Shown here one piece after another: positions 3,573 to 58,989 of a stretch of DNA of 64,000 bases (positions are counted from its first letter, which is position 1; each line of letters opens with the position of its first letter). The stretch is from IMG/VR virus record IMGVR_UViG_3300025536_000010, positions 170,887 through 234,886 of that record, one strand, 5' to 3'. The translations under genes were made by a program, and so were the position numbers. The notes under the pieces were generated by a model that had not been told where the DNA came from, ran no database searches, and saw only the letters and a list, made by a program, of their open reading frames with translations.

Positions 3573-4073
3573 GTGATAATCAACGAGGGCCGATTGGAGG
3601 TGCGCTGGTATCGCCCGTCCGACATGGTACAGCTTGTTGGGCTGCATCAATGCTGCCTACCCAAGGAAGGTTGGACGAGCAAGGATTTCTGGAAGTTCGT
3701 CCATAAGGCCGGCACGACCAACATCCTCAAAGTGCTGTCCGACGACCAGGGCAAGATCGTATACGGTACGCTGCTGTACACCCTTGGCCCCGGTGAGTGC
3801 CGTCTCCGGCGTGTCTGTGTTTGGCCCGACTACCGCCGCCGCGGTCTGGGCACTTTCATGGTCCACACGACCATGACGAGCCCACGCAGTTCGCTCAAAA
3901 ACCGCAACTTCGTCGCCAAGGTCAAAGAAGCCGACGTCACGGCCCAGCTGTTTTTGCGAAAGCTGGACTTCACGTTCAACGCAAAGGAGGCGCGCGCTCA
4001 AGACGACGAAGGCAAGGACTACTATGTCTTTCGCTTCAAAAAGCCCGAGTTTGCTGCCCTAGCAACCGGGTGA
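3573..4073 (+). CDS. GNAT acetyltransferase (RimI-like)
   Basis: VWPDYRRRGLGT acetyl-CoA motif; VKEADVTAQLFLRKLDF. Confidence 0.8.
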   Translation: MIINEGRLEVRWYRPSDMVQLVGLHQCCLPKEGWTSKDFWKFVHKAGTTNILKVLSDDQGKIVYGTLLYTLGPGECRLRRVCVWPDYRRRGLGTFMVHTTMTSPRSSLKNRNFVAKVKEADVTAQLFLRKLDFTFNAKEARAQDDEGKDYYVFRFKKPEFAALATG

Positions 4074-42793: not shown

Positions 42794-43640
42794 GTTTGTC
42801 GAGCCTGGGCTGGTCCCGGAGGCGGCACTGTTTGACCGTCTGGTGCAGATCGTCTGGGAGGCCCTGCCTGGCGATCTGGACAAGGACGTTATCGAGGACT
42901 CGTTGCGCCACCTCGTCGGCATTCATCCGACCAAGGCGCTCTACCTCGAAACGTGCTGGCGGTTAGCCGGTAACCTGCCCAGGTTGGCTCTGCGGCGTGC
43001 TGTACCGCCTTGGCACGCTCAGCGGGTCCGCGAATGGGTGCCGATGGTCGTCACAGGCTGCCGACGCTGTCTCAGCGACCGGGGCGACCGTGGTGCTCTG
43101 TTCTCGTTTCGTATTCTGGGCGGTACGCCCTGTCCGCGTATCGTCCAGAAATGGTTGTCGTTTAAGGTCTGCCGCATCCTGGCGAAAAACACTGGGTTCA
43201 ATCCGCGGCAGCACCGCACACGCTATCCTTTCACAGACCCCCGGCAGCTTGTCGGCCTGCGTCTCTACGGCCTGGTCGAGCCCGACTTGTGCAGTAGGGA
43301 ACCGGGGTTCGAGATCCCTTTGGCTCCGCATCCCAAGAGCAACGTCATCCAGCCGTCCCCGCGCGTGTTCCCGGCTACCGTGCGCGAGTACAACATAATC
43401 ATGGTCAAACGGACGTTCCGTTGCGACCCTGGCTACGGGTGCCCGGAAGGGTTCCCTATGACGTTCCCGTGCCAGCTATGCCCGGTGGGCTTCCTGCGCT
43501 GTAAGGCGGGCAAGCACCGCAAGGACTGGCGGCGGCGGGCGTGTACGCAGTGCGAACGGAAAGACGCTTTCTTCGACGACGAACTGTCCAAGGAGATGTG
43601 CGTTGACTGCTTCAACAAGCAAGCCTATCGGAGACAATGA
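42669..43640 (+). CDS. Hypothetical protein with C-terminal Cys clusters
   Basis: CQLC..C, CTQC..CVDC; ATGA-coupled to the ligase. Confidence 0.65.
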   Translation: MAGEKRRRKKKPRKLTKPFHASYNIGQITALRDSLFKILSHEFVEPGLVPEAALFDRLVQIVWEALPGDLDKDVIEDSLRHLVGIHPTKALYLETCWRLAGNLPRLALRRAVPPWHAQRVREWVPMVVTGCRRCLSDRGDRGALFSFRILGGTPCPRIVQKWLSFKVCRILAKNTGFNPRQHRTRYPFTDPRQLVGLRLYGLVEPDLCSREPGFEIPLAPHPKSNVIQPSPRVFPATVREYNIIMVKRTFRCDPGYGCPEGFPMTFPCQLCPVGFLRCKAGKHRKDWRRRACTQCERKDAFFDDELSKEMCVDCFNKQAYRRQ

Positions 43641-44815
43641 TGGCAAAGGCACCACGCATCAAGACGAAAGACACCGAGGTCAGGGCATGCCCGCGCGGGG
43701 TACTGCCTGTCCTCTACAAGAAGACGACTGGCGGCCGAGTGCAGTCCTGGGAGATTTGGGTCACCAGGCTCAAGTCGAACGGCTACGGCAAGATGTACAC
43801 CCGGTACGGCCTGGTCGACGGTCAGCAGCAGGAGATCCAAGAGATCATCTCCGAGGGTAAGAACGAAGGCCGCGGGAACGCCACCACGCCTTATGAGCAG
43901 GCTTGCCTGGAGGCAGCGGCGCGTTGGGACAAGCAGCGCAACCGTAAGGGCTACGCCGAAGACCCAACTGGCGCGGCCTCAGCAGCGATTCGTTCCGTGT
44001 CGCCCATGCTGGCCCAGAAGTTCCAGGACCACGAGAAGAAGGTGAACTGGGACACGGCCCTGGCGCAGCCCAAGCTGAATGGTTTCCGCTGCATCGTTCG
44101 AGTGGTGGAGGGCAAGCTGGTGGCGTTCAGCCGCGAGAACCAGGTTCTGGAGGTGCCGCACGTCCTCCAGGCCCTGCGCAAGCCCATGCTGAATGAGGGC
44201 ATCATGGCCGTGGATGGTGAACTATACACCCACGGCATGTCTCTCAACGTGATCTCCTCGGCCTGCAAGAAGCTCTCCAAGCTGACCGAGCAGATCCAGT
44301 ACAACATCTACGACACCGTCACGGACGAGGCGTACGCGAAGCGCATCAAAGACCTGCATCTCAAGCTGTGCTTCGGCGGAGATGCCAGGGTTATCCAGAT
44401 GGTGGAGACGGTCAAGGTGCGCACCCGGGACGAACTGATGACCGCCCAGGCCGAGTTCGTTGGGCAGGGTTACGAGGGGGCCATGCTGCGGCACGGGGAC
44501 GCTGGCTACGAGTCGGGACGGCGGTCGTCGTACCTGCTCAAGGTCAAGACCTTCCTGGACGCCGAGTTCAAAGTGGTGGACTACAAATACGGGCGTGGCA
44601 AGATGGCCAAGGTGCCCATCTTCACCTGCGTCACGGACGAGGGCCACCACTTCGACGTGCTGCCGCAGGGTACGATGGAGGAGCGGCACGAACTGGGCGA
44701 GAAAGCTGGTAGCCTGCTCGGCAGTATGCTGACGGTCAAGTACCAGGAGATGACGAAGACGGCCGAGCCGGTCCCGTTCCATCCGGTCGGGATCGGCTTC
44801 CGGGAGGAGGGCTAG
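43637..44815 (+). CDS. ATP-dependent DNA ligase with WGR-like N-terminal domain
   Basis: PMLA, QPKLNGFRC, VDGELY, IYD, YEGAMLR, LLKVK. Confidence 0.92.
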   Translation: MMAKAPRIKTKDTEVRACPRGVLPVLYKKTTGGRVQSWEIWVTRLKSNGYGKMYTRYGLVDGQQQEIQEIISEGKNEGRGNATTPYEQACLEAAARWDKQRNRKGYAEDPTGAASAAIRSVSPMLAQKFQDHEKKVNWDTALAQPKLNGFRCIVRVVEGKLVAFSRENQVLEVPHVLQALRKPMLNEGIMAVDGELYTHGMSLNVISSACKKLSKLTEQIQYNIYDTVTDEAYAKRIKDLHLKLCFGGDARVIQMVETVKVRTRDELMTAQAEFVGQGYEGAMLRHGDAGYESGRRSSYLLKVKTFLDAEFKVVDYKYGRGKMAKVPIFTCVTDEGHHFDVLPQGTMEERHELGEKAGSLLGSMLTVKYQEMTKTAEPVPFHPVGIGFREEG

Positions 44816-44816
44816 T

Positions 44817-45605
44817 ATGCCTCAGAAAACTGTCCCGGTGTCTTTCTTGAAGGATCATCCGCGGCAGCGTGAAGTGTTTGGGGTGCCGTCTCCAGAAGAA
44901 ATCGAGAGGCTGGCTGCCTCGATCAACCGTCGCGGCCTGGACTACCCGCTAGAGATACTGCCAGACGGCACCATCATCAAGGGACATCGCAGGCGTCTTG
45001 CTGCGCAGTCGCTGGGTTGGAAAGACGTCCCGGTCAAGATACTGCACGAACTTGCCGACGATCCGGTAGCCGCGTCTAGGTTGTTTCTGAGCGACAACTT
45101 TGACAGGCAGCAGCTTACGCCTTTGCGGCGGGCTAAGTGTATCGTGTCTCTCATGGAGTTGGAGATCGGCAAGTTAGTCGAGCGGTTCAACGCCAATAAG
45201 AAAGAGCAACTCAAAGAGAGCGTGGCGAAGCAACTGCACACCAGCCGGCGGACAGTGGATCGTTACTTGCTGGCTCTGCGGACCCCGTTCGAGGTCCAGG
45301 AGGCGTTCGACCGTAACAAGCTCAGCCTGGTCCAGGTCGGTAAAATCGCCATGATGTCGAAGGCTGTTCAAAACGCTATCGCGGCTCGGCTCGCGCTTGG
45401 CGAACCTCCGCGGGTTGTCTACGCAGATACGGTGGAGGACACGTCGCCATACAAGGCTATCGCGTCGTTGTTGGTTGCCGTGAACAAGGCCAGGGACGTA
45501 ATCGGCGACCAGGTGCTGGACAATGCTAAGTTGCAAAAGTACCGTGGCCGCCTTCGGGTGGCCAGGGGCTACATCGACGGACTCATCAAAGGTCAAGCGT
45601 GTTAG
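44817..45605 (+). CDS. ParB-like N-terminal domain plus HTH protein
   Basis: LAASI..RGL..PL.I....IIKGHRRR.AA..LG; DN..RQQLTP; VAKQL..SRRTVDRYL. Confidence 0.85.
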   Translation: MPQKTVPVSFLKDHPRQREVFGVPSPEEIERLAASINRRGLDYPLEILPDGTIIKGHRRRLAAQSLGWKDVPVKILHELADDPVAASRLFLSDNFDRQQLTPLRRAKCIVSLMELEIGKLVERFNANKKEQLKESVAKQLHTSRRTVDRYLLALRTPFEVQEAFDRNKLSLVQVGKIAMMSKAVQNAIAARLALGEPPRVVYADTVEDTSPYKAIASLLVAVNKARDVIGDQVLDNAKLQKYRGRLRVARGYIDGLIKGQAC

Positions 45606-45642
45606 CGAAAAGGCTAAAGCTGGCCAATAAGGAGGCGGTTTA

Positions 45643-45963
45643 ATGATGCCTCAAGGACACTTCCTACCCTGGAAGGACGTCACGGATATGCAGCTATGGT
45701 TGCTGCGCGGCCCGTGGTGCAGCGACGGTTCGGTCGCTTTGCTGTTGGCTTTTGGCCTTATCGAGAGGCTACCGGAGAACGACTGGCGGGCAGCCAGCCA
45801 TATCTGGCAGACCACGGAAAAGGGCAAAAGGCTTCTGGAAATCAACCGCGGTCGTGCGGTTGAGTTGCAGCCTGATCTTGAGAAGCTGGAGATGCAAAAC
45901 CGTATCGAGAAGCTGGAACTCAGTTTCGGCCGAGCGTTGGTGGAGGAGGCCCTGCATGCCTAG
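45643..45963 (+). CDS. Hypothetical protein
   Basis: AAGGAGG RBS. Confidence 0.6.
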   Translation: MMPQGHFLPWKDVTDMQLWLLRGPWCSDGSVALLLAFGLIERLPENDWRAASHIWQTTEKGKRLLEINRGRAVELQPDLEKLEMQNRIEKLELSFGRALVEEALHA

Positions 45964-46444
45964 CGTGCTGTTTCCCTGGGTCAGGAAACTGACCCTGGCC
46001 ATGCAGGGTACTTTGTTGACTTGCGTGCGTGGACCGGATGGTATCCGCAAGGACCATCCGGTCAAACAGTTCATCCGGGTCTACCGGCGGGCCATCCTGC
46101 GTGGGGCCAAGCCGGTGCCCGGTGATTTCATGACAGCCCAACCGTTCCTGCATGTCGACGAGGCGATGGCGCGGGGTATCGTCCCCGCCGCCCCGCGCTG
46201 GGGTAGTGCCGATTACTACCTGGCTATTCAGGAGTGGTGGGAGAAGAACGTCGACGACTTGCCGCATCACTGGTTGCTGCATTTCTGCCACTGTGCGGAG
46301 ATTGTCGGCTGTTATCACCCGGATTCGTATGCTCGCAGGTTCTGGTTCGTGGTCTACGAAGGGATCGTGAAGTCTTTCCACATGATCCCCGAATCCAAAG
46401 AAGCACTGGACCAGCGCCTGCGTGAGCGTGGAGGCCCATACTGA
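45956..46444 (+). CDS. Hypothetical phage protein
   Basis: GGAGG RBS; RGPDG, LPHHWLLHFCHCAEIVG.YHPD. Confidence 0.65.
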   Translation: MPSVLFPWVRKLTLAMQGTLLTCVRGPDGIRKDHPVKQFIRVYRRAILRGAKPVPGDFMTAQPFLHVDEAMARGIVPAAPRWGSADYYLAIQEWWEKNVDDLPHHWLLHFCHCAEIVGCYHPDSYARRFWFVVYEGIVKSFHMIPESKEALDQRLRERGGPY

Positions 46445-46573
46445 TGATGGCCACTGGTTGACGGAGAAAACTTAGTTTGCTTGACCAGTGGGGTCCGTTA
46501 GGGTATGAAAGAGGAGCCTGCCGGTTGGCCCCGGCAGGCTCAAACACACTAACCTCTTGTGGGAGAGGTCAGC

Positions 46574-47020
46574 ATGCTCTCGTACTCTATACCTCCGCAG
46601 TCAGCATTTCAACAGTTATCTCCGGCAACTCGACTTAGTTGGGTGGCGGGTCTTATCGAAGGCGAAGGTTACATTAGTATCGGTGGTCGTCGCGGTAGCC
46701 GCGGTGGTCGCTGCCGCTTGTACCTGCGTGTCGGTGTCCGTATGACGGACGAAGACGTAATTCGCCGACTTGCCGATGCTGTCGGTCGTGGGACCGTTCA
46801 CGGCCCGTACCCGAACGGTAAGGGTTGTAAGATCGTGTGGGTGTGGTCGTGGCAGGGTGACGAGGCTAGCGCTTGGGTTACTAAGTGCCTGTCGCCGCTG
46901 CTGTGTAGTAGGCGTAGGCGGCAGATCGTCAAGGTACTCGCCGAAGTAGCTACGTCTATCGAGAATGCCAACGAACCTGGCCTTCATCGGCAAAGATCCT
47001 TGCTGCCTGACTTCTTTTAA
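46574..47020 (+). CDS. Free-standing LAGLIDADG homing endonuclease
   Basis: WVAGLIEGEGYISI, VRMTDEDVIRRL....G.G. Confidence 0.85.
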   Translation: MLSYSIPPQSAFQQLSPATRLSWVAGLIEGEGYISIGGRRGSRGGRCRLYLRVGVRMTDEDVIRRLADAVGRGTVHGPYPNGKGCKIVWVWSWQGDEASAWVTKCLSPLLCSRRRRQIVKVLAEVATSIENANEPGLHRQRSLLPDFF

Positions 47021-47030
47021 GGAGAGCGTC

Positions 47031-47513
47031 ATGGGGCGCGAGCGGTACAGTCCGCAGGAGCAGCAGTTCTACAGACTCTACTTGAACAGTCCGGCGTGGC
47101 GGGCTCGCCGGAAATCAAGAATCGCTAAAGCCGGTGGTCGTTGTGAGTGGACCGTCGACAATTTCAACGGCCCTCCAGTACGCTGCGCAAGAACGCGGTA
47201 CTTGTGCGTCCACCACAACACTTATGAACGTCTTGGCGCTGAGCAGGATGGTGACCTGGATGTGTATTGTTGGGCGCATCACATGTTGGAGCACCTGCTA
47301 TGGAAGCGCTGCGTCCGCTGCGCGCAGCCGTGCCTAGAAAACGACGGCCTGGCCGAGCGCTGGTTGACCATCACCCTGCGGGCGATGGGTATCAACCTCG
47401 ACGCCGGTCAGGTCGCGTGGAGAGGTCTGCCGACCAAGGAGTTTCTCCTGGACCAGATCGGCAGCATCTGTTTTACTTGCGAGGAACAACTGGGGCCTCG
47501 CGTCAAGGAGTAA
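47031..47513 (+). CDS. HNH-like endonuclease
   Basis: YLNSPAWR.RR...A..RCE, VHHNTYERLG.E..DL...C..HH. Confidence 0.75.
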   Translation: MGRERYSPQEQQFYRLYLNSPAWRARRKSRIAKAGGRCEWTVDNFNGPPVRCARTRYLCVHHNTYERLGAEQDGDLDVYCWAHHMLEHLLWKRCVRCAQPCLENDGLAERWLTITLRAMGINLDAGQVAWRGLPTKEFLLDQIGSICFTCEEQLGPRVKE

Positions 47514-47515
47514 GC

Positions 47516-48535
47516 ATGGGTAAGCTGGTACAACCGAAAGTGTTTCTGGTGGGCTACACAGGCGTCGACGCCGAAGGGCTCAAGGCGTACCTGGAGTACA
47601 CCGGCCAGCAGGACTTCCTGGAGTCCTGGCAGAAGGCCCGCGACCTGGGCCTGTCGGACGGTGAGTGTCTGTGTTCGCTGTACGCCAAGATGTGCTACAA
47701 GACGCTCATCCTGGGCAAGAACGACAACATCAAAAGGGTCAGGGACATTCAGGACAACCTGACGGGCACCTTCGACACCGCCCACGGCTCGGTCTTCGAG
47801 CACCTGCAACTCAACTTCGTGGTGACCGACTGCTCGCGGGTTTACACGCACGAGCAGGTGCGCCACCGGCCAGGATGGGCCTACTCGCAGACCTCGGGCC
47901 GCTACTGCCGTGGCGAGAGCCTCGACATCGTGACGGACCCGATCCTGTCGGCGATCCAGGATGACTTGAACCGCCACGCCAGCAACCTGGAAACCGCGTA
48001 CAAGGCGTGGTGCGACCGCATGGGCCTCAACGGCTTTGCGCGTCTTCGTGCGGCATTGGAGTCGCGGGCGGATAAAAACTACCCACTCCACGACGCCGAC
48101 TTGGTGGTGGAGGCGCAGCGGCTCGGCATGCGCCCCAATGCGAAGACCGGAGAACTCGAAGTGCCGATGGACCGGGCCAAGAAGGTCACCTCGGCCCTGC
48201 GTCGCTACCTGCCCAACGGACAGGCCAACGAAATGGGCATGTCCTGCAACATCCGGGCGCTGCGGCACACCATCGCCATCCGCACCCAGCGCTTCGCCGA
48301 GTGGGAGATCCGGGTAATTTTCAACCAGGTCTACCAGCTAATCAAACAGAAGTTCCCCGCGATGGTCGCAGACGGGCAGGAGTTCGTGTACGATGGCCTG
48401 CTGGAGATCGCGGGGATGCGGATGCAGCCCTACGAGATGAAGGCCGGCGACCCGGGGGCGCTGCGCTTCTACACCTCCGATCAGCTGGCCACGGAACTCG
48501 ATACCCGGACGGCCACCGCAGGATTACCGGAATGA
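47516..48535 (+). CDS. thyX: FAD-dependent thymidylate synthase
   Basis: HGSVFEH, THEQVRHR, SQTSGRY, R..LP, NIRALRH, AEWEIR. Confidence 0.93.
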   Translation: MGKLVQPKVFLVGYTGVDAEGLKAYLEYTGQQDFLESWQKARDLGLSDGECLCSLYAKMCYKTLILGKNDNIKRVRDIQDNLTGTFDTAHGSVFEHLQLNFVVTDCSRVYTHEQVRHRPGWAYSQTSGRYCRGESLDIVTDPILSAIQDDLNRHASNLETAYKAWCDRMGLNGFARLRAALESRADKNYPLHDADLVVEAQRLGMRPNAKTGELEVPMDRAKKVTSALRRYLPNGQANEMGMSCNIRALRHTIAIRTQRFAEWEIRVIFNQVYQLIKQKFPAMVADGQEFVYDGLLEIAGMRMQPYEMKAGDPGALRFYTSDQLATELDTRTATAGLPE

Positions 48536-49251
48536 ACCGTTTGACTTTGGACATGGGCTACCCACTCGACGCGCGGCACGATTGGGTACGCCTGGCGGCT
48601 GCTTACCAGCAGGCCAAACCGTTTCCGCATGTCGTCATCGACGACTTTCTTGAGCGCCGTTTAGCCCTGGAAACCGCCAGGGCGTTACGGCGGATCAAGG
48701 AGCCGTTCTGGCAGAACGAGGACCACGATGACCAGGTCTTCAAGTTCTGGTGCGACAACCCGGAGGCTGTGCCGCAGCCCGGCCGGGACTTGCTCTACTG
48801 GTTCAACTCGGGCACCATGCTGGCCATCGCGGAAAAGCTGACCAATATCCGTGGCTTGCTGCCCGACCTGGACTATCACGGCGGCGGCGTTCACCGCACC
48901 AAGCCTGGTGGGCGCCTGTCGGTCCACTGCGACTACAACGTCCACCCGGTCACGCAGCTGCACCGGCGCGTCAACGCTCTCTACTTCCTGAACGAGACGT
49001 GGCGGCCGGAGTGGGGCGGTCAGCTGGAGTTGTGGTCCGCGGACATGAAACAGTGCGTGCAAAAGATCGAGCCGGTGCTAAATCGGCTGGTCCTTTTCAC
49101 GATCACCGACACGGCGTTTCATGGGGTGCCAGCGCCGGTCGATGCCCCAGTGGATCGCTACTCTCTGGCCCTGTACTACTTCACGGCCGACAGGCCCGAG
49201 TCCGAGAAGTCGGACCCGCACATGGCCCTGTGGCAGCAGCCGCAGGCGTGA
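48532..49251 (+). CDS. 2OG-Fe(II) oxygenase
   Basis: PFPHVVIDDFL, GGGVH, HCD (HxD), WGGQLELW, FHG, RYS. Confidence 0.9.
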   Translation: MNRLTLDMGYPLDARHDWVRLAAAYQQAKPFPHVVIDDFLERRLALETARALRRIKEPFWQNEDHDDQVFKFWCDNPEAVPQPGRDLLYWFNSGTMLAIAEKLTNIRGLLPDLDYHGGGVHRTKPGGRLSVHCDYNVHPVTQLHRRVNALYFLNETWRPEWGGQLELWSADMKQCVQKIEPVLNRLVLFTITDTAFHGVPAPVDAPVDRYSLALYYFTADRPESEKSDPHMALWQQPQA

Positions 49252-49257
49252 ACTCTC

Positions 49258-49288
49258 TTGTCTCGGAAGCGGTGATACGGTATCACCG
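49258..49288 (+). promoter_or_regulatory. Putative promoter overlapped by a perfect palindrome (operator)
   Basis: TTGTCT-17-TATCAC; CGGTGATAC-G-GTATCACCG at 49270-49288. Confidence 0.5.
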
Positions 49289-49339
49289 TCTTATTGAACC
49301 TACCACGACGGTAGGCGGTCACCAATGAGGAGAATCGTT

Positions 49340-49453
49340 ATGGCGAAGAAAGCACCGGCCAGCGCGTCAGCCCCGAAGGGCGGCAAGGGAAGCAAGGGCA
49401 CCAAGCCGACGACGAAGGGGAGCAAGGGGGGTAAGGGCGGTAAGGGCAAGTAA
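49340..49453 (+). CDS. 37-aa Lys/Gly-rich peptide
   Basis: GAGGAG RBS; MAKKAPASASAPKGGKGSKGTKPTTKGSKGGKGGKGK; below the ORF-track cutoff. Confidence 0.7.
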   Translation: MAKKAPASASAPKGGKGSKGTKPTTKGSKGGKGGKGK

Positions 49454-49487
49454 CCCAAAACTGCTGAACCCTGTAAGCTGGTCCAAG

Positions 49488-49521
49488 GAGGGGCCTGGAA
49501 CGTCCAGGCCCCTCTTCGTTT
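49488..49521 (+). terminator. Rho-independent terminator
   Basis: GAGGGGCCTGGA-ACG-TCCAGGCCCCTC-TTCGTTT. Confidence 0.7.
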
Positions 49522-49543
49522 ACCCAAGCAAGAAAGGATAGAC

Positions 49544-49861
49544 ATGAGCGAGACGACTACGCCTGTGACCAAACAGCGGACGCCTTCTGCCAGGGTCATT
49601 GCGGCCATGTGGCTCAAGCAGCAGATCGAGGAGGGCCTTTGCCCGGATGCCTTGACGGAGTGCTCCGGCTCGCGCGTGACCGAGCGGAAGATCAACAAGA
49701 TCCGCGAGCAGATGTTCAAGATCGCCGGTAAGGGCACCCTGGTGCGCATCGACCGCATCGTTGACGGTTTCAAGAACCCGAAGCCGGCCGACCCGAAGAT
49801 GGCCGAGCGTATGAAGGCCATGCACGCGGCGCGCAAGAACAAGAAGAAGGAAGAAGGCTGA
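49544..49861 (+). CDS. Basic hypothetical protein
   Basis: AAGGA RBS; strong codon bias. Confidence 0.65.
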   Translation: MSETTTPVTKQRTPSARVIAAMWLKQQIEEGLCPDALTECSGSRVTERKINKIREQMFKIAGKGTLVRIDRIVDGFKNPKPADPKMAERMKAMHAARKNKKKEEG

Positions 49862-49862
49862 C

Positions 49863-50384
49863 ATGCCCTTCGAGCCGCTCTACACGTCGACGGGCGCTGA
49901 GTTCAGCCAGTGCCAGGTTTACCGCTACACGCTTACGCGCTGGTGGGATCGGCTGGCCAAGCGGGGGCGTGTGTGCTGGGTCATGCTGAACCCCAGTACC
50001 GCTGACGCGCTCGTAGACGACCCCACCGTTCGTCGTTGTGCGCAGTTCTCGCACAGGTGGGGCTACGGCGGCATGATCGTGGTGAACATTTTCGGGTTGC
50101 GGGCGACCGACCCCAAGCATCTGCGCAAGGTTGCTGACCCTGTTGGCCCGGACAACGATTTTGCTGTCATCGCGGCGGCGACGGCTTGTGACCTGGTCAT
50201 GGCTGCCTGGGGGACTCACGGTGGGCTGAACAACCGTGGGTGCCAGGTTCATCGGAAGCTGGCTCGCACCCCGGGCCTAGAAGTCTACGCGCTGGGTGTC
50301 ACGAGCGGTGGTTTTCCCAAACACCCGCTCTACATCAAGGGCGACGTAGTGAAGGAACTTTTCCCGTATAAGAGCCATGCTTAG
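49863..50384 (+). CDS. DUF1643 family protein
   Basis: YRY.L.R.W, MLNPSTAD..DDPT.RRC, VN.F..RATDP, AAWG, PKHPLY. Confidence 0.88.
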   Translation: MPFEPLYTSTGAEFSQCQVYRYTLTRWWDRLAKRGRVCWVMLNPSTADALVDDPTVRRCAQFSHRWGYGGMIVVNIFGLRATDPKHLRKVADPVGPDNDFAVIAAATACDLVMAAWGTHGGLNNRGCQVHRKLARTPGLEVYALGVTSGGFPKHPLYIKGDVVKELFPYKSHA

Positions 50385-51354
50385 CGCTCTCAACTTCCCG
50401 TACCCACTGCCGGAGTTGAAACCGGAGTGGCGCACTTCGACCGTGGTACAGCTGGCCAAGGCGATCCTGGAGAACAAGGACTGGCCTGACATGCCGATCC
50501 TTGCTGACGCGCTCGAAGAAGCCGGTTGTATCGACCAGGGCGTCTTGGAACATCTGCGGGGCACCTGGCGAACCTGCTCGTGCTGCGACGGCAAAAAACG
50601 TGTGCCGTACGCCGCGAAGTACGAAAACGACGGCAGCACGACTGTCATGTCCTGGCGGGACTGCTACATGTGCGACGGGCGTGGCCAGGTTCCCGAGGAC
50701 ACACACGGCCCGTGTGCGGCGCCGTACCGCAACGGCTGCTGGCACGGCACCTGTTGGTTGGTTAGGCACCTGGCCGGAGTCTCGCAGATCCTGGTGGCGC
50801 GGTTCAAAGAGAGAACCGGAAGCGGCGAAGAAGTGGACCAGGAAGCCACCGCCATCAACCCGGGTGACTGGTTCGGCAAAACCTGGCAAGTTGTCGCCGC
50901 AGATTGCATGGACCCGCCACGGTACATCGTCGAAGCCGACACGCCCTCGGACGCCGAAGAGGAGTGGATCGACAGTGATTACGGTGCGCACTACCGTATT
51001 GAGCCGAACGATCCAGACTACCTGGACCCCGACCGCGTACATTTCACCGGGGCGGGGACAGCGTATGATGGCGAAAACATTATGATCTACGGCCAGGAGT
51101 TCGTCGCGCACGTCAGAGGCAGTATGCCTTTTGCGTGCCGCTACTTCGGGCCTGGCCTCCCCCACGAGGGGGTGTCCCCGCTGGTGTATCAGTACGGGGA
51201 GCAAGAGTGCGAGCATTGCGAGAAGAAGTGCTTTGCGTATGAACCGCTTGCTTTGCGGTTGCGTGGGCACTACTGCTCGCAGGCGTGCCACGATCTAGCG
51301 CACGCCGACCCGCAGGACGACGAGCACGGCCTGGAACAGTTTGAGGCTCGCTGA
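50377..51354 (+). CDS. Hypothetical protein with a Gemmataceae-type 'PILADALEEAGC' domain and zinc motifs
   Basis: PEWRTSTVVQLAKAI......MPILADALEEAGC....LEHLR. Confidence 0.7.
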   Translation: MLSALNFPYPLPELKPEWRTSTVVQLAKAILENKDWPDMPILADALEEAGCIDQGVLEHLRGTWRTCSCCDGKKRVPYAAKYENDGSTTVMSWRDCYMCDGRGQVPEDTHGPCAAPYRNGCWHGTCWLVRHLAGVSQILVARFKERTGSGEEVDQEATAINPGDWFGKTWQVVAADCMDPPRYIVEADTPSDAEEEWIDSDYGAHYRIEPNDPDYLDPDRVHFTGAGTAYDGENIMIYGQEFVAHVRGSMPFACRYFGPGLPHEGVSPLVYQYGEQECEHCEKKCFAYEPLALRLRGHYCSQACHDLAHADPQDDEHGLEQFEAR

Positions 51355-51425
51355 CGTCGCGTTAGAAAGAGGGGCTCTGGTAGAATAGCCCAAGAACGGT
51401 GTTTCTGTCCCAAGGAGGTTTGACC

Positions 51426-51644
51426 ATGAACGCAATCACTCACAAGTCGCTGACCGAGACGGAACGCAACCGCCTCACGGCCGCCCTGAACGCCAACGCG
51501 CACCAGGACAAGGCCATTTTCATTGGCCAGGCCGACACGTCGTTTATCGGCTTCGATCAGCCGGGCATGCGCGGCACGCACCCGGAGGAGGTCAGTGACG
51601 CGGAGGTCATCAACGCCATCAAGAGCGTGCCCTGCCACTACTAA
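51426..51644 (+). CDS. Hypothetical protein
   Basis: AAGGAGG RBS; upstream TGGTAGAAT at 51378-51386; downstream hairpin 51675-51697. Confidence 0.65.
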   Translation: MNAITHKSLTETERNRLTAALNANAHQDKAIFIGQADTSFIGFDQPGMRGTHPEEVSDAEVINAIKSVPCHY

Positions 51645-51738
51645 GCAACAGACGGATGCCAACCCGTTGTTCCTCGCCCCGGCGCCCAGCCGGGGCGGGT
51701 TCTCTAAACCACTTTTTAGATTTCACGGAGTAGCCGTC

Positions 51739-52410
51739 GTGACTCTCAACGCGCGTATGAGCCCCAGCGACAGTCGTCTGTACAACGTCGGCCGCGACGT
51801 TGCCTGGTGTTTCGGCCACGCTATCATGGAAGTCGCCAAGCGGTGCGAAGAGGGTCGCTGGGAGGCCCTTGTCAAGCTGGCGAAGGAGAAAGGCGTTACG
51901 GATGAGGAACTGGGTAAGGCGTGCCAGTGTCTCTGCGTCTTTGTCGAGACGCAGATGGACCAGCGGGAGAGCATGGCTCAAGGGCTGGCGCGCTGCGGCT
52001 TCCTCGATCTGAACGAGAACGCCCGTGTGATCGTTATGGCCCACTTGGGTACGATCATGCTCGGCATGCACTGGGCCGGCGTACGCGAGACGACCATCCA
52101 GGGCGTCGGCCCCACGCTTGGCTACCAGGGCCTGCGGCGTTACGGCCGACGCTGCGCTCTACTCATGCAGCTGCCGCCTTGGCGGCGCCGGCTCTATAAC
52201 TTCTGGACCAGGGCCAAGCGTGCCTGGCACACGTTGTTCCAGACCGGCCTCTATTCCGATTTCAACCACGGCGGGTCGAACCAACCGAATCACGCCGTCC
52301 CGCAGCGGCCTGTGGTCCGCAACCAGGTCCGCGATAAGTGCGAGGACGCCGCCGACCGCGCGTTGGCGTGCGAGGAAGAATCACGCGATGAACCAATCAC
52401 TGCTGGATAG
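51739..52410 (+). CDS. Hypothetical protein
   Basis: GGAG before GTG 51739. Confidence 0.6.
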   Translation: MTLNARMSPSDSRLYNVGRDVAWCFGHAIMEVAKRCEEGRWEALVKLAKEKGVTDEELGKACQCLCVFVETQMDQRESMAQGLARCGFLDLNENARVIVMAHLGTIMLGMHWAGVRETTIQGVGPTLGYQGLRRYGRRCALLMQLPPWRRRLYNFWTRAKRAWHTLFQTGLYSDFNHGGSNQPNHAVPQRPVVRNQVRDKCEDAADRALACEEESRDEPITAG

Positions 52411-52612
52411 CCGCACCTTGCTCATAGTCGCCGTGTCTGTCGTCTTGTTTTTTGGGCTGCGCCTGCTGGTAATGACCGTGCTGCTGACCCTGGCCAAACG
52501 CGGCAGGCCGCTCCGGTGTCCACACTGCTTGACGGTGCTGCGGCGCACGCCCTGCCTGACCCTGACCATGTGCAGTCAGTGCGGTCGTGTCTACGAGGTT
52601 GAACACCGATGA
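52388..52612 (+). CDS. Small membrane protein with zinc ribbon
   Basis: One hydrophobic helix; CPHC...CSQCG. Confidence 0.55.
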   Translation: MNQSLLDSRTLLIVAVSVVLFFGLRLLVMTVLLTLAKRGRPLRCPHCLTVLRRTPCLTLTMCSQCGRVYEVEHR

Positions 52613-53478
52613 TTGTGAACTACTGGCCGTCGTGGTTTCGGGCGCTTTACGGCGGCGACTGGCCGCTGGACTACTGCTGCGTGGATCTCGAAACCACTGG
52701 CTACCTGGCCACCCAGGACGTCATCACCCAATGGGGGCACTGTTTGGTCCAGGACGGCAAGGTGATCGACCAGATCTCGCTCGTTATCGACTGGACCGAA
52801 CATGCTGTCGTGCCGGATCACTGGCTCAGCAGCCGGCTCAACTGTTTGCGGCAGGGTATGGAGATCGGCGGCAAGAAGTGTCACATGTCCTACGCCCGCA
52901 TGAAACAGGAGGGTATGAAGCCGGACAAGGCGTTCAAATTCATCCTCCAGTTCACCGACACTATCAGGAAGAAAGGCATCCCGTTCGTCCTGCACGGTGG
53001 CGTGTTCGACGAGAAGATGCTCTGTGCCAACGTCCAGGGCTTCGTCAACCCGAACCTGGGTTTCACCCTGGGCGACAACGGCTGGATCGACACCGAGGGC
53101 GTCGAGAAAGCCAGCCAGGACGTTCACCAGATCCGGTTCCACCCGCAGAAGAATGACACGCTGCGGAAATACTGGCACCGAGTCAAGTACACGCGCGTCA
53201 ACGGGCTCAAGTCCAATCTGGACGACCACTGCTTCCGCAAGTACAAGTTCCAGGAGGAGCACGGCATCGAGCCCAAACAGATGCACGACGCCAAGGTGGA
53301 CTCGTTCTGTTGCCACCTGCTGATGGAGAAGTTCCGGGCCTTGATCCGGCCGACGCCGGAGACGCCGCCTTATCCAAGCGCGGATCACAAAGAGGCCAGG
53401 AAAGGCAAAACGATAGTCATGCCCCGCCCTGGGCCGCTCGTCGCGCTCAGTCGGGTGCGAGGACAAAGACGGACATGA
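52609..53478 (+). CDS. DEDDh 3'-5' exonuclease (DnaQ-like)
   Basis: VDLETTG, H...FD, IDT, HDAKVD. Confidence 0.85.
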   Translation: MIVNYWPSWFRALYGGDWPLDYCCVDLETTGYLATQDVITQWGHCLVQDGKVIDQISLVIDWTEHAVVPDHWLSSRLNCLRQGMEIGGKKCHMSYARMKQEGMKPDKAFKFILQFTDTIRKKGIPFVLHGGVFDEKMLCANVQGFVNPNLGFTLGDNGWIDTEGVEKASQDVHQIRFHPQKNDTLRKYWHRVKYTRVNGLKSNLDDHCFRKYKFQEEHGIEPKQMHDAKVDSFCCHLLMEKFRALIRPTPETPPYPSADHKEARKGKTIVMPRPGPLVALSRVRGQRRT

Positions 53479-53481
53479 TAC

Positions 53482-54252
53482 ATGAGCCTGTTCTATTCGG
53501 ACTTTTGGGGCTCGGCTCGCTCGCGGGCCAAGGCCGCCGCCGCCAGCGGTGTGCAACGTGCAAAAAAGAAATCTGGAAAGGCGAAGGCTACCGTCTCGTC
53601 GACGGCCTCGCCTACCACCAAGCCTGCGCCCCGAAACAAGCAACCGGACCCGCTGGAGGTGGTGGCGTGGTTCGTGGCCCATGTCCAGGCCCGTGACACG
53701 CCGATTTACCTGGGCATCGACCCAGGCGCCACGGGCGCGATTGGGATGCTGTGCGGCAAGCTGTACGCGGTCGTCGACATCCCCGTCTACCGGGTGAAGG
53801 TCAAACGTGTCCGGCACAACAACAAGAAGATCCGTGCTTTGACGGGCCGGAAAACCCGGACGGTCGACGGCTCGACGAGCAAGTTCGACTTTCCGGCAAT
53901 CTGTCGGCTGTTTCGCTTGTTCAAGCCGATCAAGAAAAAACTCATCGTCGTCCTCGAAGAGATTCCGCCGACGATGGGCAAGCGCGCACGCAAATACGTT
54001 GAGATCATGGTGAACCGCGCCTACGCGATCTGGCCGCTGTTTCTCTGCTCGAAAGGCTACACGGTCAAAGAGATCAAGCCTTCGGACTGGAAGAAGCGGA
54101 TGGACCTGTACGGCAAGGACAAGGAGGCGTCTCGCCGGCTAGCGCTCAAGATCTTCCCGATGGCGAACATCCAACGCAAGGAAGACACTGATCGGGCCGA
54201 GGCGCTGCTGATAGCTGAATGCGTACGAAGGATACATAATGGCAAAGCGTAA
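53482..54252 (+). CDS. RuvC-like Holliday junction resolvase
   Basis: LGIDPGATGAIG, VLEE, P..WKK, DRAEALLIA. Confidence 0.85.
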   Translation: MSLFYSDFWGSARSRAKAAAASGVQRAKKKSGKAKATVSSTASPTTKPAPRNKQPDPLEVVAWFVAHVQARDTPIYLGIDPGATGAIGMLCGKLYAVVDIPVYRVKVKRVRHNNKKIRALTGRKTRTVDGSTSKFDFPAICRLFRLFKPIKKKLIVVLEEIPPTMGKRARKYVEIMVNRAYAIWPLFLCSKGYTVKEIKPSDWKKRMDLYGKDKEASRRLALKIFPMANIQRKEDTDRAEALLIAECVRRIHNGKA

Positions 54253-55081
54253 ACCCGCCGACCATGTGCAGTTCGCTCAGTACGGCGATTGCGTCAAACT
54301 GTTCCAGGCGTCGACGAAAAAGTACGACCTCATCGTCGCCGACCCGCCGTACAACTTCGGGATGCCGTACGAGGCATACGACGACAACAAGTCCTACGAA
54401 GCCTACATGAAGTGGACCGATCAGTGGCTCGGGGCCGCCCTGAGCCGTCTTGCGCCGCACGGTAGCATGTTCATTTTCGTGCCCGACGAATGGGTCACGG
54501 AGATCGACTACAAATGCACGCATCACTACCAGCTGTACAAGCGGCGGCACATCCTCTGGGCTTTCACCTTCGGGCAGAAGGCTCACCGCAACTTCACGAG
54601 AAGCCACTGCCACATTCTCTACTACACCAAGACCAAGACGCGGTTCACGTTCAACGAGGACGCGGTCAAGGTGCCGTCGGCGCGGCAGCTGGTGTACAAC
54701 GACCCCAGGGCCGCCAAAGGCGGCAAACCGCCCGACGCGACCTGGATGCTGCTCAAGGAGCAGTTGGAGCCGTACATGACGCCGGACACAGACACCTGGC
54801 TCGTATCCAGGATCTGTGGTACTTACAAGGAACGCGAAAAGCACAGCCCGAACCAGATCCCGGTGCCGATCACCGCCAGGATCGTGCGAGCGTGTTCCAA
54901 CCCAGGTGACTGGGTTTGTGATCCGTTTTGCGGCACCGGCAGCAGCGGCGTGGCCTGTGCCGGCAACAGCAGGAACTGGGACGGTTTCGACGTGGGCAGG
55001 AACTGCGTCAAACAGTCGCAGCGACGGATCAACGAGGTAAGGAAACTCAATGGACTCGGCAAACTCGCAGCGCTCGTCTGA
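54239..55081 (+). CDS. DNA N6-adenine/N4-cytosine methyltransferase (beta class), orphan
   Basis: DPPY precedes DPFCGTGS. Confidence 0.9.
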   Translation: MAKRKPADHVQFAQYGDCVKLFQASTKKYDLIVADPPYNFGMPYEAYDDNKSYEAYMKWTDQWLGAALSRLAPHGSMFIFVPDEWVTEIDYKCTHHYQLYKRRHILWAFTFGQKAHRNFTRSHCHILYYTKTKTRFTFNEDAVKVPSARQLVYNDPRAAKGGKPPDATWMLLKEQLEPYMTPDTDTWLVSRICGTYKEREKHSPNQIPVPITARIVRACSNPGDWVCDPFCGTGSSGVACAGNSRNWDGFDVGRNCVKQSQRRINEVRKLNGLGKLAALV

Positions 55082-55178
55082 GCCGGCTACCGCCGGGGCC
55101 GCACTGCTGATTTGCGCTATCCTAGCGATGGGCGTGCTTATCACCGTGGCCGCGTTGGTCATAGTGGCCCTGTTGTAA
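55050..55178 (+). CDS. 42-aa single-helix membrane peptide
   Basis: AAGGA RBS; MDSANSQRSSEPATAGAALLICAILAMGVLITVAALVIVALL. Confidence 0.55.
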   Translation: MDSANSQRSSEPATAGAALLICAILAMGVLITVAALVIVALL

Positions 55179-55201
55179 AAAGTGGCTTTTGGGGACGCAT
55201 C

Positions 55202-56515
55202 ATGGTCAGGAAGAAAGTCAAGCAGCGTGAGGCAGCAGCCAAATCCAAGACCGTCAAGAAACGAGTCACCACGGCCGACCTGAGCAAGGCCCTCAAGGTC
55301 AAACCACTCCGAGCGGGCAGCCCGGCCTCGAAACTCGTCGATCCCGCGGACGGCCTGCCGCAAACGCCGATCCTGTCTTCGCGGGCGATGGGTATCGACG
55401 TCAACGACTATCAGATGCTGCCCCAGGCCGTACCGGACAACCTGTCGCCTGAGCAGCGGGCAATCAAGGAAGCTGGCAAGCTCGCTGACGACCTGCTCAA
55501 GCGCGAGGAATGGTCGCACGTTTTCCAGGCCATGAAGACGCTGCGCCAGGGCTACGCCGTGGTCTACCGCTGCCTGCAAGATCTCTGCGCCAAGCTGCAC
55601 GAAGACTTCGAGAAGCGTGGCGTGGAGATGCCTCTGGTGGAGGACTTCCTGATCCAGTACGCCATGTACGAGTCCTCCAAGCCGTTCACGGAACACCAGT
55701 GGATGGACAACGTCATCAACTCCTTCCTGCCCTGGCTGGCAACCGTGCTCGACGAACACACGGCTGCCGACGAGAAAGAGGCACAGGACCAACGCATCAA
55801 GGAGAACGAGGAGCGGCAGACGCGCCCAGTGCCCATCGGTTTCAAGCACACGCCAGAGCTTGAAGCTGCCATGCTGGAGCGGGACCGTAGCCTGGTCCTG
55901 GTCGGCTGGAAGCCGGCTATCTTGTGGTTGCTGGACCAGGTCTGCTCGCACGCCCTCCTCAGTAAGGACGAGCAGGTTTACCAGGTGGTGCGGTTCATGG
56001 ATAGCGCACCCAAGGGCAAAGACCAGCATTCTCGTCTCATCCGCCTGGGTGGTAACGCCTGGCGCGGTTGTGCCGACTCGGACAAGAAGCTGGCGATGTG
56101 TATGGGCAGCTATGTCGCCGACCGCATTTCCGCCCAGCCCGATCTGTTCATCGTCGACCATCTGCCCAGCGCCTATACGGCTGGCTTCGTCGGCAGGCCC
56201 GAAGCAGCCAGGGCGGGCGACGCCCACCGCCGGTTTCACAAATGGTGCGAGAAGGCTGCCTGTGCTTTCCTCGGCTGTGTTTGCGTTCCCGAACGCGGCA
56301 CGCCCGACATCACCGACCCGGCGTTTGAGCAACTTCGCACCTTCGCTACTTTGCGTCCGGTCATCGTGCAGGACGAAGCGGAGGATCTGGAACCCAACAA
56401 GTACCGAATCATCATTGGGCACGCGGCAACTGTGCTCGATGTCGAGAAGGACGTGATCGAGTCCTACGGGCGGACCATATTGCTGCCCGCAGGCCGTAGT
56501 ACCATCGAAGGATAA
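55202..56515 (+). CDS. Hypothetical protein, possible degenerate DnaB/RecA-fold C-terminal domain
   Basis: SLVLVG with no GKT; PDLFIVDHL resembles Walker B. Confidence 0.6.
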   Translation: MVRKKVKQREAAAKSKTVKKRVTTADLSKALKVKPLRAGSPASKLVDPADGLPQTPILSSRAMGIDVNDYQMLPQAVPDNLSPEQRAIKEAGKLADDLLKREEWSHVFQAMKTLRQGYAVVYRCLQDLCAKLHEDFEKRGVEMPLVEDFLIQYAMYESSKPFTEHQWMDNVINSFLPWLATVLDEHTAADEKEAQDQRIKENEERQTRPVPIGFKHTPELEAAMLERDRSLVLVGWKPAILWLLDQVCSHALLSKDEQVYQVVRFMDSAPKGKDQHSRLIRLGGNAWRGCADSDKKLAMCMGSYVADRISAQPDLFIVDHLPSAYTAGFVGRPEAARAGDAHRRFHKWCEKAACAFLGCVCVPERGTPDITDPAFEQLRTFATLRPVIVQDEAEDLEPNKYRIIIGHAATVLDVEKDVIESYGRTILLPAGRSTIEG

Positions 56516-56517
56516 CC

Positions 56518-57186
56518 ATGACAGCAAAAATCTTTGTCGGCTTTCGTACGCGGCCGGTGGAGGACTTCAAGGAATTCATGCCGAAGTTCTCCGCCTCCCG
56601 CGTTTTGACGGACCCCAAGAAAATCGAGGCCGACATCCAGGCCAAGGCCGAGATGTTCGTTTCGACCTGCAAGGACGCGCCGTACACCGGGACGTTCGAC
56701 GAGGTCTTCCTGGTGGACCGCCGGAAGAAGAAAGTGCTCCAGTGGCTCTACCCGCCCAAGGACAGTGACAAGCCGCGCATCTGCGTCAGCGTCCGTAACT
56801 ACCTGCTCAAGGCGTACCCGACCGCCTGGGACTGGGATACGCACGGTAAGAGGCCGGAGGTCGTCTTCCTCGGGTTCAACCCGAGATTGTTTTTGAAGAT
56901 GCTCGGCCTGGAGTGTTCTCTGCCGGGCGTTGGTAAACCCTTGCCGCCGAAACTGTGGTACAGTAACTCGGACCACAGAGACATCGAGGAGGCGGTGCTG
57001 CCCAAGGACTTCGAGAAAGTCTTGACCCTGGACACCGTCATCAAGCGCCGCCGCCCGCTTGATCCCGAGGCGGCCAAGAAGTGGGACGAACACGTCAAGG
57101 ACTGGCCCGGCCCCGGGCAAGTTCCCAGGAAGGACGTCGAGATCGCCATCGAACTTGCTGCGCAGTTAGGGTTCCTGTCGGAGTAG
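56518..57186 (+). CDS. Degenerate 3'-5' exonuclease-like protein
   Basis: IFVGFRT in place of DIET; DPKKI...P.TG; FLGFN; terminal KDV. Confidence 0.5.
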   Translation: MTAKIFVGFRTRPVEDFKEFMPKFSASRVLTDPKKIEADIQAKAEMFVSTCKDAPYTGTFDEVFLVDRRKKKVLQWLYPPKDSDKPRICVSVRNYLLKAYPTAWDWDTHGKRPEVVFLGFNPRLFLKMLGLECSLPGVGKPLPPKLWYSNSDHRDIEEAVLPKDFEKVLTLDTVIKRRRPLDPEAAKKWDEHVKDWPGPGQVPRKDVEIAIELAAQLGFLSE

Positions 57187-57211
57187 TAGCGACGCAGGCA
57201 CGGAGGCCGCG

Positions 57212-57979
57212 ATGCACGAGAAGTACAAGCAACCGCAGGGGGATGGCTGTTTCACCGCCCACGGCCCGTCCGTGGACAGCAAAGGGCTGCTCAAAAAGTA
57301 TCCCTTGCGCTTGGGGGCAGCAGCGGCGCTGGGCGACGTACTGGACGAGTACGTCTTTTTCACGCCTGCGTCGTTGTACCTGCACGGTTACTTCTGCGAC
57401 GCCCCGCTTATCGACTTCGTATGGGAGATGGGCGGTGACGTGCGCTTGTACCATCGTCGGTTTAACCGGCCGATTTTCCGCGGTCTGGAGACGCGCGACG
57501 GTGACAAAGACTGGAACCATGTCCTGTGGGCGATCAAGCGCGAGTTCTGGGCTAACTTCAACGATTTCCTCATCAGCACGGTGCTGTCGTTCCGCGAGGC
57601 TACGCCGCCGCACCTGTCGATGTTTGCCGAGCAAGAGGTTACGATTCTGGACCCGCTGGCCGTCGACCGGACGGTACTCTACCGGGCCGACTTGCCCATG
57701 CTGGTTGTGTCGGCCTTCTGCGTGAACGGTAGTTTGGGGCGGACCAGCTTCGTGGAGGGCAAGAGCGCCCTGATGGACCCGCCGCAGCTGGCACAGTGGC
57801 CAGCAGACGGTGAAGTGTTGGCCTACGCCGACGCGCTGTTCCGCGGCAAGGGTAACCCGGTGAACGCGAGACTCAACTACCGCAACGCACAGGAGGCTAA
57901 GGCCAGGTATGCTAATGAAACTGGAACTGGGCCGCGACTGCGCCCTGGAGATTCACGAGAACAAAGAAGGCGAAACTGA
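57212..57979 (+). CDS. Hypothetical protein
   Basis: GGAGG RBS. Confidence 0.65.
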   Translation: MHEKYKQPQGDGCFTAHGPSVDSKGLLKKYPLRLGAAAALGDVLDEYVFFTPASLYLHGYFCDAPLIDFVWEMGGDVRLYHRRFNRPIFRGLETRDGDKDWNHVLWAIKREFWANFNDFLISTVLSFREATPPHLSMFAEQEVTILDPLAVDRTVLYRADLPMLVVSAFCVNGSLGRTSFVEGKSALMDPPQLAQWPADGEVLAYADALFRGKGNPVNARLNYRNAQEAKARYANETGTGPRLRPGDSREQRRRN

Positions 57980-58244
57980 GGCCATGACTTTCCTGCCGGA
58001 GTTTACCACTCCCAAGGGGCAGCTGGTCCTGGGTTACTGCACGGTGTACAACGATGACGGCACCAAGCTGGACTCGTTCGAGCTTGTGGCGTCGGGGGCG
58101 ACCGGCAAGGTCACCAAAAGAACTCGGTCGAAGCCCGCCAAGGCGTGGGTCGACATGACCGAGGACGAGCGCAAGGCCAAATCCGAGGACGAGCACAAAG
58201 TCAAATCCAAGGACGAGGCCGAAGACGAGGAAGACGATTCATGA
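57909..58244 (+). CDS. Hypothetical protein
   Basis: Codon bias; ATGA overlap with the next gene. Confidence 0.6.
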   Translation: MLMKLELGRDCALEIHENKEGETEAMTFLPEFTTPKGQLVLGYCTVYNDDGTKLDSFELVASGATGKVTKRTRSKPAKAWVDMTEDERKAKSEDEHKVKSKDEAEDEEDDS

Positions 58245-58918: not shown

Positions 58919-58989
58919 AAAACGTCGGCATTTGAGTCACAATATATGACGGGCGGCCCGTTAGACTACGGGTCCGCCCGCTCATCGTT

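Follow-up and report, generated by a model that had tools for sequence, protein, structure and literature searches.

Results

The gene and its three parts

The final 64 kb of virus record IMGVR_UViG_3300025536_000010 (IMG/VR; 234,886 bp, rated complete by CheckV) is the stretch of DNA that we analysed, and we call it the window. Within the replication and DNA-modification module of this window lies a gene (50377..51354) that encodes a three-part chimera and is conserved among large uncultured phages of one lineage. Its product, P0001, begins with a domain of a type found in proteins of the planctomycete family Gemmataceae, continues with an acidic domain, and ends with a CxxC...CxxxC zinc finger. 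Reading frames were called and translated with genetic code 11 only.

A first-pass annotation had placed the gene at exactly these coordinates. The reading frame is on the plus strand and gives 325 residues on translation, and the pattern by which the annotation recognised a Gemmata-like domain is indeed there: F7-P8, L11-P12, PEWRTSTVV at 16-24, MPILADALEEAGC at 39-51, L57 and H59-L-R61, and at the end of the domain GCW (120-122) with a second CW (126-127). The annotation overlooked two thirds of the protein, namely the second domain and the terminal zinc finger. A minus-strand frame that overlaps the gene (50335..51291) is without support from relatives, whereas the plus-strand frame has full-length relatives (E 1e-32). 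TMEM240, the sole row of the family scan for P0001, scored 19 bits against a cut-off of 27 and is taken as a chance match to a cysteine-rich sequence.

The Gemmataceae-type domain

In a word-indexed search, 92 relatives of P0001 emerged from 5.8 billion proteins. Two of them, P0002 and P0003, are nearly full-length (94% coverage) and a few others span the second half only, while about 85 match residues ~6-62 only, at 45-60% identity and with E-values down to 3e-9 in that very large collection. Against genome contigs, tblastn gave E down to 2e-15, and on these sequence comparisons the domain match is far beyond chance. All named proteins among the ~85 are hypothetical proteins of Gemmataceae, Gemmata sp. 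or "Planctomycetes bacterium". In the host proteins, which are 200-300 residues long, the matching segment forms the final ~85 residues and follows a conserved N-terminal module; the core motif starts 40-42 residues from the C-terminal end in ~70 of 88 motif-bearing matches. P0001 differs in having the domain at its N-terminus and in lacking the host N-terminal module. The domain signature, W-x-T-x-T-V...PILADAL-E/Q-x-A-G-C...L-x-H-x-R...H...G-C-W...L-x-G, is nonetheless present in P0001 in every block, and the near-invariant columns that P0001 shares are W18, P40, I41, L42-L46, G50, C51, L57, H59, R61, G120, C121 and W122.

How widely is the domain distributed? One genome per species was scanned for 185,579 species, and 367 of the first 600 pattern hits were confirmed as loci of the domain. 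Of these 367, the best 80 belong to Gemmata, Limnoglobus, Frigoriglobus, Fimbriiglobus, Urbifossiella and unnamed bins of Gemmataceae or Planctomycetia, with a few Isosphaeraceae (Singulisphaera, Isosphaera) and four bins that carry other, probably wrong, labels. Copy numbers are high, at least 89 in Limnoglobus roseus PX52 (Gemmataceae) and at least 73 in Gemmata algarum. Profile matches at E <= 1e-8 were obtained in 66 of 81 sampled Gemmataceae genomes, in 40 of 151 genomes sampled from the class and in 2 of 201 sampled from the phylum; fewer candidates were scored per genome in the wider samples, and one of the two phylum matches is the query genome. The named matches, the genome counts and the copy numbers thus agree with the annotation's description of a Gemmataceae-type family that is greatly expanded there.

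The family is unnamed, having no Pfam or NCBIfam model, and we found no description of the domain in the literature. Pfam gave nothing for ten long host open frames ending in the domain, and NCBIfam and PADLOC gave nothing for host family members except AbiEii in one protein. That protein, P0038 (367 residues, on a 63.5-kb NCBI contig), joins an AbiEii nucleotidyltransferase toxin (PADLOC, E 5e-92) to a C-terminal Gemmataceae-type domain. A possible relative is the "repeat-companion domain" TIGR02996, another short Gemmata-expanded domain, with a similar ADxLEExG core; no TIGR02996 or other NCBIfam match was seen at E up to 0.1-1 for P0001 or for six proteins of the host-type family (five bacterial, one from a viral contig).

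Cys51, His59, the His before GCW and the GCW cysteine are near-invariant across the host family, which suggests a structural zinc site; in P0001 the conserved Cys/His pattern (C51, H59, H110, C121/C126) probably holds a structural zinc ion. The AlphaFold model gives the three helices of the N-terminal domain with confidence (predicted local distance difference test, pLDDT, above 90 for residues 11-60). Structure comparison of this model reached a best Z of 3.9, with generic helical repeats only, and Foldseek against the PDB a best E of 7.

The host-type domain is carried by 45 IMG/VR viral loci, some of them tandem arrays. Two viral contigs have 3-5 copies each, IMGVR_UViG_3300013121_000037 (112 kb; L089, L107, L116, L134) and IMGVR_UViG_3300026538_000054 (193 kb; L113, L145). 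On these multi-copy contigs the domain stands in a host-like architecture, with four copies in tandem in L145, and several of the copies have a CxxC segment inserted. ART-PolyVal, a LexA-like repressor and an Acb2/Tad1-type gene are encoded on the 112-kb contig as well. Tandem arrays occur in host genomes as well: L104 (G384:C1:2980000-2996000) has six genes in 16 kb, and L103 (G002:C162:46000-62000) is a second example. In both host arrays, which were chosen because they were arrays, SMI1_KNR4 genes (PF09346, E 5e-20 and 8e-9) and DUF2314 genes lie between the family members, an arrangement that resembles poly-immunity loci.

The zinc-knuckle insert

Alignment of P0001 with 86 host domains places a 47-residue zinc segment exactly between the HxR part and the His...GCW part; 48 residues lie between R61 and H110 in P0001, versus ~5-8 in host proteins. 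The two zinc motifs read C67xxC70DG and C96xxC99DGRG. The annotation's claim of a domain interrupted here by a CxxC...CxxC zinc segment is borne out by this alignment. Its comparison with DnaJ holds in part. As in the DnaJ cysteine-rich domain, the insert has an exact CxxCxGxG motif (C96-G103) and a CxxCxG (C67-G72), and those of relatives are similar. Unlike the DnaJ domain (PF00684), with its four repeats and two zinc centres, the insert has two motifs, enough for one centre, and there is no match to the Pfam model DnaJ_CXXCXGXG at E up to 1, no J domain and no DnaJ C-terminal domain. The insert is modelled poorly (pLDDT ~50).

A CxxC...CxxC segment occupies the same site in 7 of 17 fusion proteins and is missing from the other 10; the insert is therefore a subfamily feature of the fusions and not peculiar to one phage, a point that the annotation missed. 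P0029, a protein of host architecture from the 112-kb viral contig, has an independent zinc-type insert at this site. Because both the seven fusions and P0029 carry such inserts, the loop is an insertion hot spot. By a rough count, long loops are found in ~12 of 55 viral frames versus ~3 of 150 host matches, and insertions in the loop thus seem to be more frequent in viral contigs than among host copies.

The acidic domain and the terminal zinc finger

With residues 140-325 as query, 40 proteins of ~133 residues were found at 33-46% identity. Searching 1.84 billion representatives exhaustively with a profile raised the number to 405 clusters, of which 242 had E <= 1e-10. Positions 9-133 of the family profile match residues 147-276 of P0001 (E 6e-39, whole library), and INPGDWFGKTW and VEAD lie within this ~130-residue core. 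Among 197 family members that were sorted by architecture, 131 stand alone, 36 have a C-terminal extension, 21 an N-terminal one and 9 both; 17 of the 197 carry the host-type domain in front. The stand-alone members (n=40) are strongly acidic, with a median net charge of -20 and a median pI of 4.2. NCBIfam and PADLOC have no match for the family. The model of residues 140-325 is good (pLDDT 87, predicted template modelling score 0.79). Glu186, Tyr230 and Tyr256 are invariant in the 17 fusions, and one Asp is invariant across the wider acidic family.

In the terminal finger C278, C281 and C304 are invariant among the 17 fusions and C300 is nearly so. Its CxxC-18 residues-CxxxC spacing is like that of the TRASH, FCS, MYM and YacG fingers, and an FCS finger superposes with a root-mean-square deviation of 1.8 A over 34 residues. 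The likeness to FCS, TRASH and YacG fingers is weak, however, since the Z scores of 2.1-2.6 are far below significance, and there is no Pfam match to zf-FCS or TRASH.

Where is the acidic domain found on its own? On metagenome contigs, the stand-alone gene comes after a gene for ArdC (ArdcN and MPTase-PolyVal domains) and before one for an integrase or resolvase. The ArdC gene, a gene for a protein of ~311-313 residues and the acidic gene form an uncharacterised cargo set of planctomycete integrated elements; ArdC-linked acidic-gene loci were noted in the genomes labelled G368, G335, G327, G224, G411, G312 and G436. Of 201 sampled Planctomycetia genomes, 23 match the family profile and hold one or two copies, and one cluster member is a protein of Gimesia chilikensis. 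In ten of these 23 genomes, 8 of 11 acidic copies lie 2-6.5 kb downstream of an ArdC N-terminal domain on the same strand. None of 72,556 plasmids and 50,697 phage records carried a member of the family. A gene for an ArdC N-terminal domain is lacking from the genome of our phage, whose own acidic copy is fused and sits within the replication module.

A syntenic gene of a phage clade

Both domains occur in one chain in 17 clusters at 50% identity. In all 17 fusions H59, C121, W122, C126, E186, Y256-x-G-P-G, C278, C281 and C304 are invariant, and P0001 has every one of these. P0001 and P0251 are 39% identical over the full length, and the identities of 27-40% indicate that the fusion is old within the phage lineage. 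The gene order ligase, ThyX, fusion, a ~290-residue exonuclease-like protein, N6/N4 methylase and a ~440-residue protein is common to the window and to the contigs with P0003 (L002) and P0184 (L102); the shorter contig with P0251 (L100) shows the order from the fusion onward to the methylase only. Another full-length relative is encoded on a 219-kb viral contig. The fusion is thus a syntenic gene of a phage clade and not a one-off capture, which the annotation did not see. No relative of the fusion protein was found among 50,697 GenBank phage records. The DNA polymerase of the phage is at most 27% identical to its closest counterpart in the same records, and the phage has no near GenBank relative.

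The neighbourhood

The window has a G+C content of ~0.61 throughout, and nearly all of its genes are on the plus strand. Its replication module comprises an SbcC-like protein, two helicases, a primase and the DNA polymerase; the window also encodes an ATP-dependent ligase, a ParB-like protein, ThyX, a 2OG-Fe(II) oxygenase, a DUF1643 protein, a Holliday-junction resolvase and the N6/N4 DNA methylase. The DUF1643 gene looks like an insertion beside the fusion gene, because the related contig L002 lacks it at the corresponding place by synteny. The 72-residue gene on the other side is likewise missing from the matching place, so that the window has two extra genes flanking the fusion gene. Coordinates are collected in Table 1.

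Two further genes had been taken by the annotation as planctomycete-like. The GNAT acetyltransferase (Pfam PF13508) found nothing except itself in the word search of 5.8 billion proteins and therefore carries no taxonomic signal, so that the annotation's view of it is not supported. The stand-alone C-terminal domain of the RNA polymerase alpha subunit (PF03118, E 8e-14) sits in a 126-residue open frame and is a possible candidate for a transcription take-over factor. Several other frames were seen in passing: one of 42 residues that is almost all Lys, Gly, Ser and Thr, and that could be a basic peptide or non-coding; a small one with a predicted membrane helix followed by CxxC...CxxC, similar membrane and zinc-ribbon genes being present at the matching place in L002; and a frame with a poly-Asp tail, a GAC/GAT repeat that is the source of many spurious Gemmataceae DNA matches.

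Table 1. Features of the fusion gene, of its surroundings and of related loci (window coordinates unless a contig is named)
Feature	Position	Strand	Remarks
Whole fusion gene	50377..51354	+	P0001, 325 residues, net charge -26, pI 4.75; full-length relatives P0002, P0003, P0251
Gemmataceae-type domain, first part (residues 6-62)	50392..50562	+	three helices, PILADALEEAGC motif, H59-L-R61
Zinc-knuckle insert (residues 63-109)	50563..50703	+	C67xxC70xG, C96xxC99xGxG; insertion relative to 86 host domains
Gemmataceae-type domain, second part (residues 110-140)	50704..50796	+	H110, duplicated GCW motif (C121, C126), last helix
Acidic core domain (residues 147-276)	50815..51204	+	hmmsearch envelope; family mostly stand-alone, ~133 residues
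Terminal zinc finger, C278xxC281...C300xxxC304	51208..51288	+	TRASH/FCS-like spacing; conserved in 17 fusions
DUF1643 gene	49863..50384	+	Pfam PF07799, E 4.5e-41; stop overlapped 8 nt by start of fusion gene
72-residue gene	51426..51644	+	downstream of fusion gene; homologue of single-copy small Gemmataceae-type protein
Perfect 9-bp GC-rich hairpin	51675-51697		3' of 72-residue gene
GNAT acetyltransferase gene	3573..4073	+
Stand-alone alpha C-terminal domain	6876-7055	+
42-residue open frame	49325-49453	+
Membrane helix and CxxC...CxxC frame	~52391-52612	+
Similar membrane and zinc-ribbon genes	L002 11712-12098; 12329-12544
Frame with poly-Asp tail	58145-58918	+	repeat at 58879-58915
Stand-alone acidic genes	L003 8001-8408; L004 2252-2650		~311-313-residue protein directly after ArdC in both

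Host assignment

The annotation had suggested a planctomycete host, and three kinds of gene content speak for it: the distribution of the host-type domain, the homologues of the 72-residue gene and the presence of acidic-domain relatives in Planctomycetia. In 29 of 151 sampled Planctomycetia genomes the 72-residue gene has a small single-copy counterpart, 40-57% identical to it; of these 29 genomes, at least 23 have the domain too or come from the Gemmataceae sample. The phage protein and the bacterial homologue share the terminal INAIKSVPCHY, and many Gemmataceae genomes match the 3' end of the gene with ~80% DNA identity; other matches in the same DNA search were to the methylase, to the domain motif (up to 95% over 38 nt) and to the trivial poly-Asp repeat. 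A Gemmataceae-like planctomycete is our best inference for the host, and we hold it with good confidence, though the host may yet be one of the Isosphaeraceae or another member of Planctomycetia.

Discussion

What might such a chimera do? The protein is a likely host-manipulation factor, with a mechanism that we can propose from its sequence features. Tentatively, we read it as a bipartite protein of host interaction, with docking by the host-type domain and inhibition by the acidic domain and its zinc finger. The phage would infect a Gemmataceae-like planctomycete and would probably make the fusion protein together with the products of the surrounding replication genes. The host-type domain would act as a docking module for the partner that is bound by the constant C-terminal domain of the host paralogues. 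The acidic domain and zinc finger would then serve as the effector, blocking a nucleic-acid-directed defence or control protein of the host, by analogy with acidic anti-restriction proteins. The leads for this reading are the AbiEii fusion, the viral tandem arrays, the Acb2/Tad1-type neighbour and the company that the acidic domain keeps with ArdC.

Ocr and ArdA are acidic DNA-mimic anti-restriction proteins of mobile elements. The acidic family resembles them in being small, with a net charge of -20 in 134 residues, and in lying beside ArdC in integrated elements; in phages the acidic domain is encoded near a DNA methylase. The family has no likeness in sequence or fold to any solved anti-restriction protein (best Z 3.1).

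A number of results weigh against the docking and inhibition proposal. Pfam, NCBIfam, PHROGs and PADLOC offer no family for P0001. The fold of the acidic domain resembles no solved structure, with a best E of 2 against the PDB by Foldseek and a best Z of 3.1 against 48,161 chains, and searches of the ESM Atlas by features and by shape gave no informative cluster. The invariant Glu, Asp and Tyr residues mean that the acidic core could be an enzyme. Acidity and adjacency to ArdC are circumstantial support for an effector. No coupling protein was found on the contigs that carry the ArdC-linked elements, which is why we call these integrated elements and not conjugative leading regions. Host genes of the family, when examined singly, are scattered among ordinary neighbours, such singletons being mostly uninformative. 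As to the host, the assignment rests on gene content; positions 40001-60000 of the window gave no spacer-like DNA match to 121 Gemmataceae genomes, and among public sequencing runs the stretch occurs in one only, a subsurface metagenome that is probably its source.

The annotation had raised the idea of a decoy, in which the host-type domain is the active part and competes with the host paralogues for a shared partner, leaving the acidic domain as an aid to solubility or mere bulk. At 45-60% identity the phage domain does lie inside the host family's range of variation, and on many viral contigs the domain occurs with no acidic domain, frequently as several copies. On the other hand, the acidic domain and the terminal finger are strictly conserved in 17 of 17 fusions and hence are under selection, and one phage copy would face ~70-90 host paralogues. 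A complex prediction for the phage N-terminal domain with the host N-terminal half scored 0.27 against a mark of 0.32, which counts neither for nor against. We think titration unlikely.

Might the protein instead serve the phage's own housekeeping, as a zinc-dependent accessory or enzyme of DNA replication, repair or nucleotide metabolism, with the domain as a structural module that targets nothing in the host? Its fixed synteny in related contigs, between ThyX and the exonuclease-like gene and near the resolvase and methylase, is what one would expect of such a protein, and so are the invariant Glu186, Tyr230 and Tyr256 and the family-wide Asp in the acidic core. Yet no nucleic-acid enzyme fold or family was matched, and in bacterial chromosomes the stand-alone acidic gene is found beside ArdC and recombinases, away from replication modules. 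This role, too, seems doubtful to us.

An immunity-like role has less to commend it. SUKH (SMI1/KNR4) immunity domains have reportedly been recruited by DNA viruses (Zhang, Iyer & Aravind 2011), and if the host family were likewise a family of toxin binders, the phage copy might act as an antitoxin and neutralise an abortive-infection or polymorphic toxin of the host. Like SUKH, the Gemmataceae-type family is a small domain expanded in bacteria, sometimes in tandem, with copies in viruses. The interspersion of the two host arrays with SMI1_KNR4 and DUF2314 genes, the automatic naming of one family Atlas cluster as SMI1/KNR4, and the existence of one AbiEii fusion all fit. But the arrays were picked as arrays, and in Limnoglobus no more than 1-2 of the 7 SMI1_KNR4 genes have a family gene nearby, which is about chance level; the singletons have ordinary neighbours. 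Unlike SUKH, the host-type family has no match to a SUKH profile in Pfam or NCBIfam, and its predicted fold is a small helical unit, probably zinc-stabilised. We consider the immunity role improbable.

Equally improbable is a host outside the Gemmataceae, with the domain drawn from a mobile or viral gene pool that seeded that family: the frequency of the domain on viral contigs, a few genome matches labelled as uncultured Alcaligenaceae or Alphaproteobacteria metagenome-assembled genomes, and the missing spacer match in those 20 kb would agree with it, but the domain is extremely skewed to one family and the odd labels are on metagenome bins, the adjoining 72-residue gene matches the single-copy Planctomycetia gene, and the acidic domain has its relatives in Planctomycetia and none among the plasmids and phage records searched.

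We return to the docking and inhibition proposal in order to carry it one speculative step further. Poxvirus proteins with ankyrin repeats and a PRANC or F-box-like terminus offer an analogy, in that a constant small terminal "box" is attached to variable host proteins and viral copies exist, including arrays; there is no homology, and the likeness is one of design only. The C-terminal domain of Gemmataceae proteins could be a bacterial "box" of this kind, a zinc-stabilised dock that would join ~70-90 variable proteins per cell to one machine, and a lineage of planctomycete jumbo phages may have hijacked it, both as look-alike arrays and by joining it to an acidic anti-defence effector of a new class. 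This is a long shot, and we know of no degradation or other machinery that binds the bacterial domain. If it were true, phages would have captured the "box" much as poxviruses captured F-box/PRANC adaptors, a parallel among prokaryotes.

To our knowledge, phages of Planctomycetota are almost unknown. A domain so skewed to one family is a simple gene-content marker, by which this 235-kb phage, along with dozens of other viral contigs, is assigned to hosts of Gemmataceae-like type. Three uncharacterised families come to light with it: the host domain, with tens of copies per genome, the ArdC-linked acidic protein, and the phage-borne fusion of the two. The capture of host domains by phages is a known theme; the families involved here are undescribed. 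Should the acidic domain prove to be an anti-defence effector, it would be one not seen before, from a phylum whose defence and counter-defence have hardly been studied.

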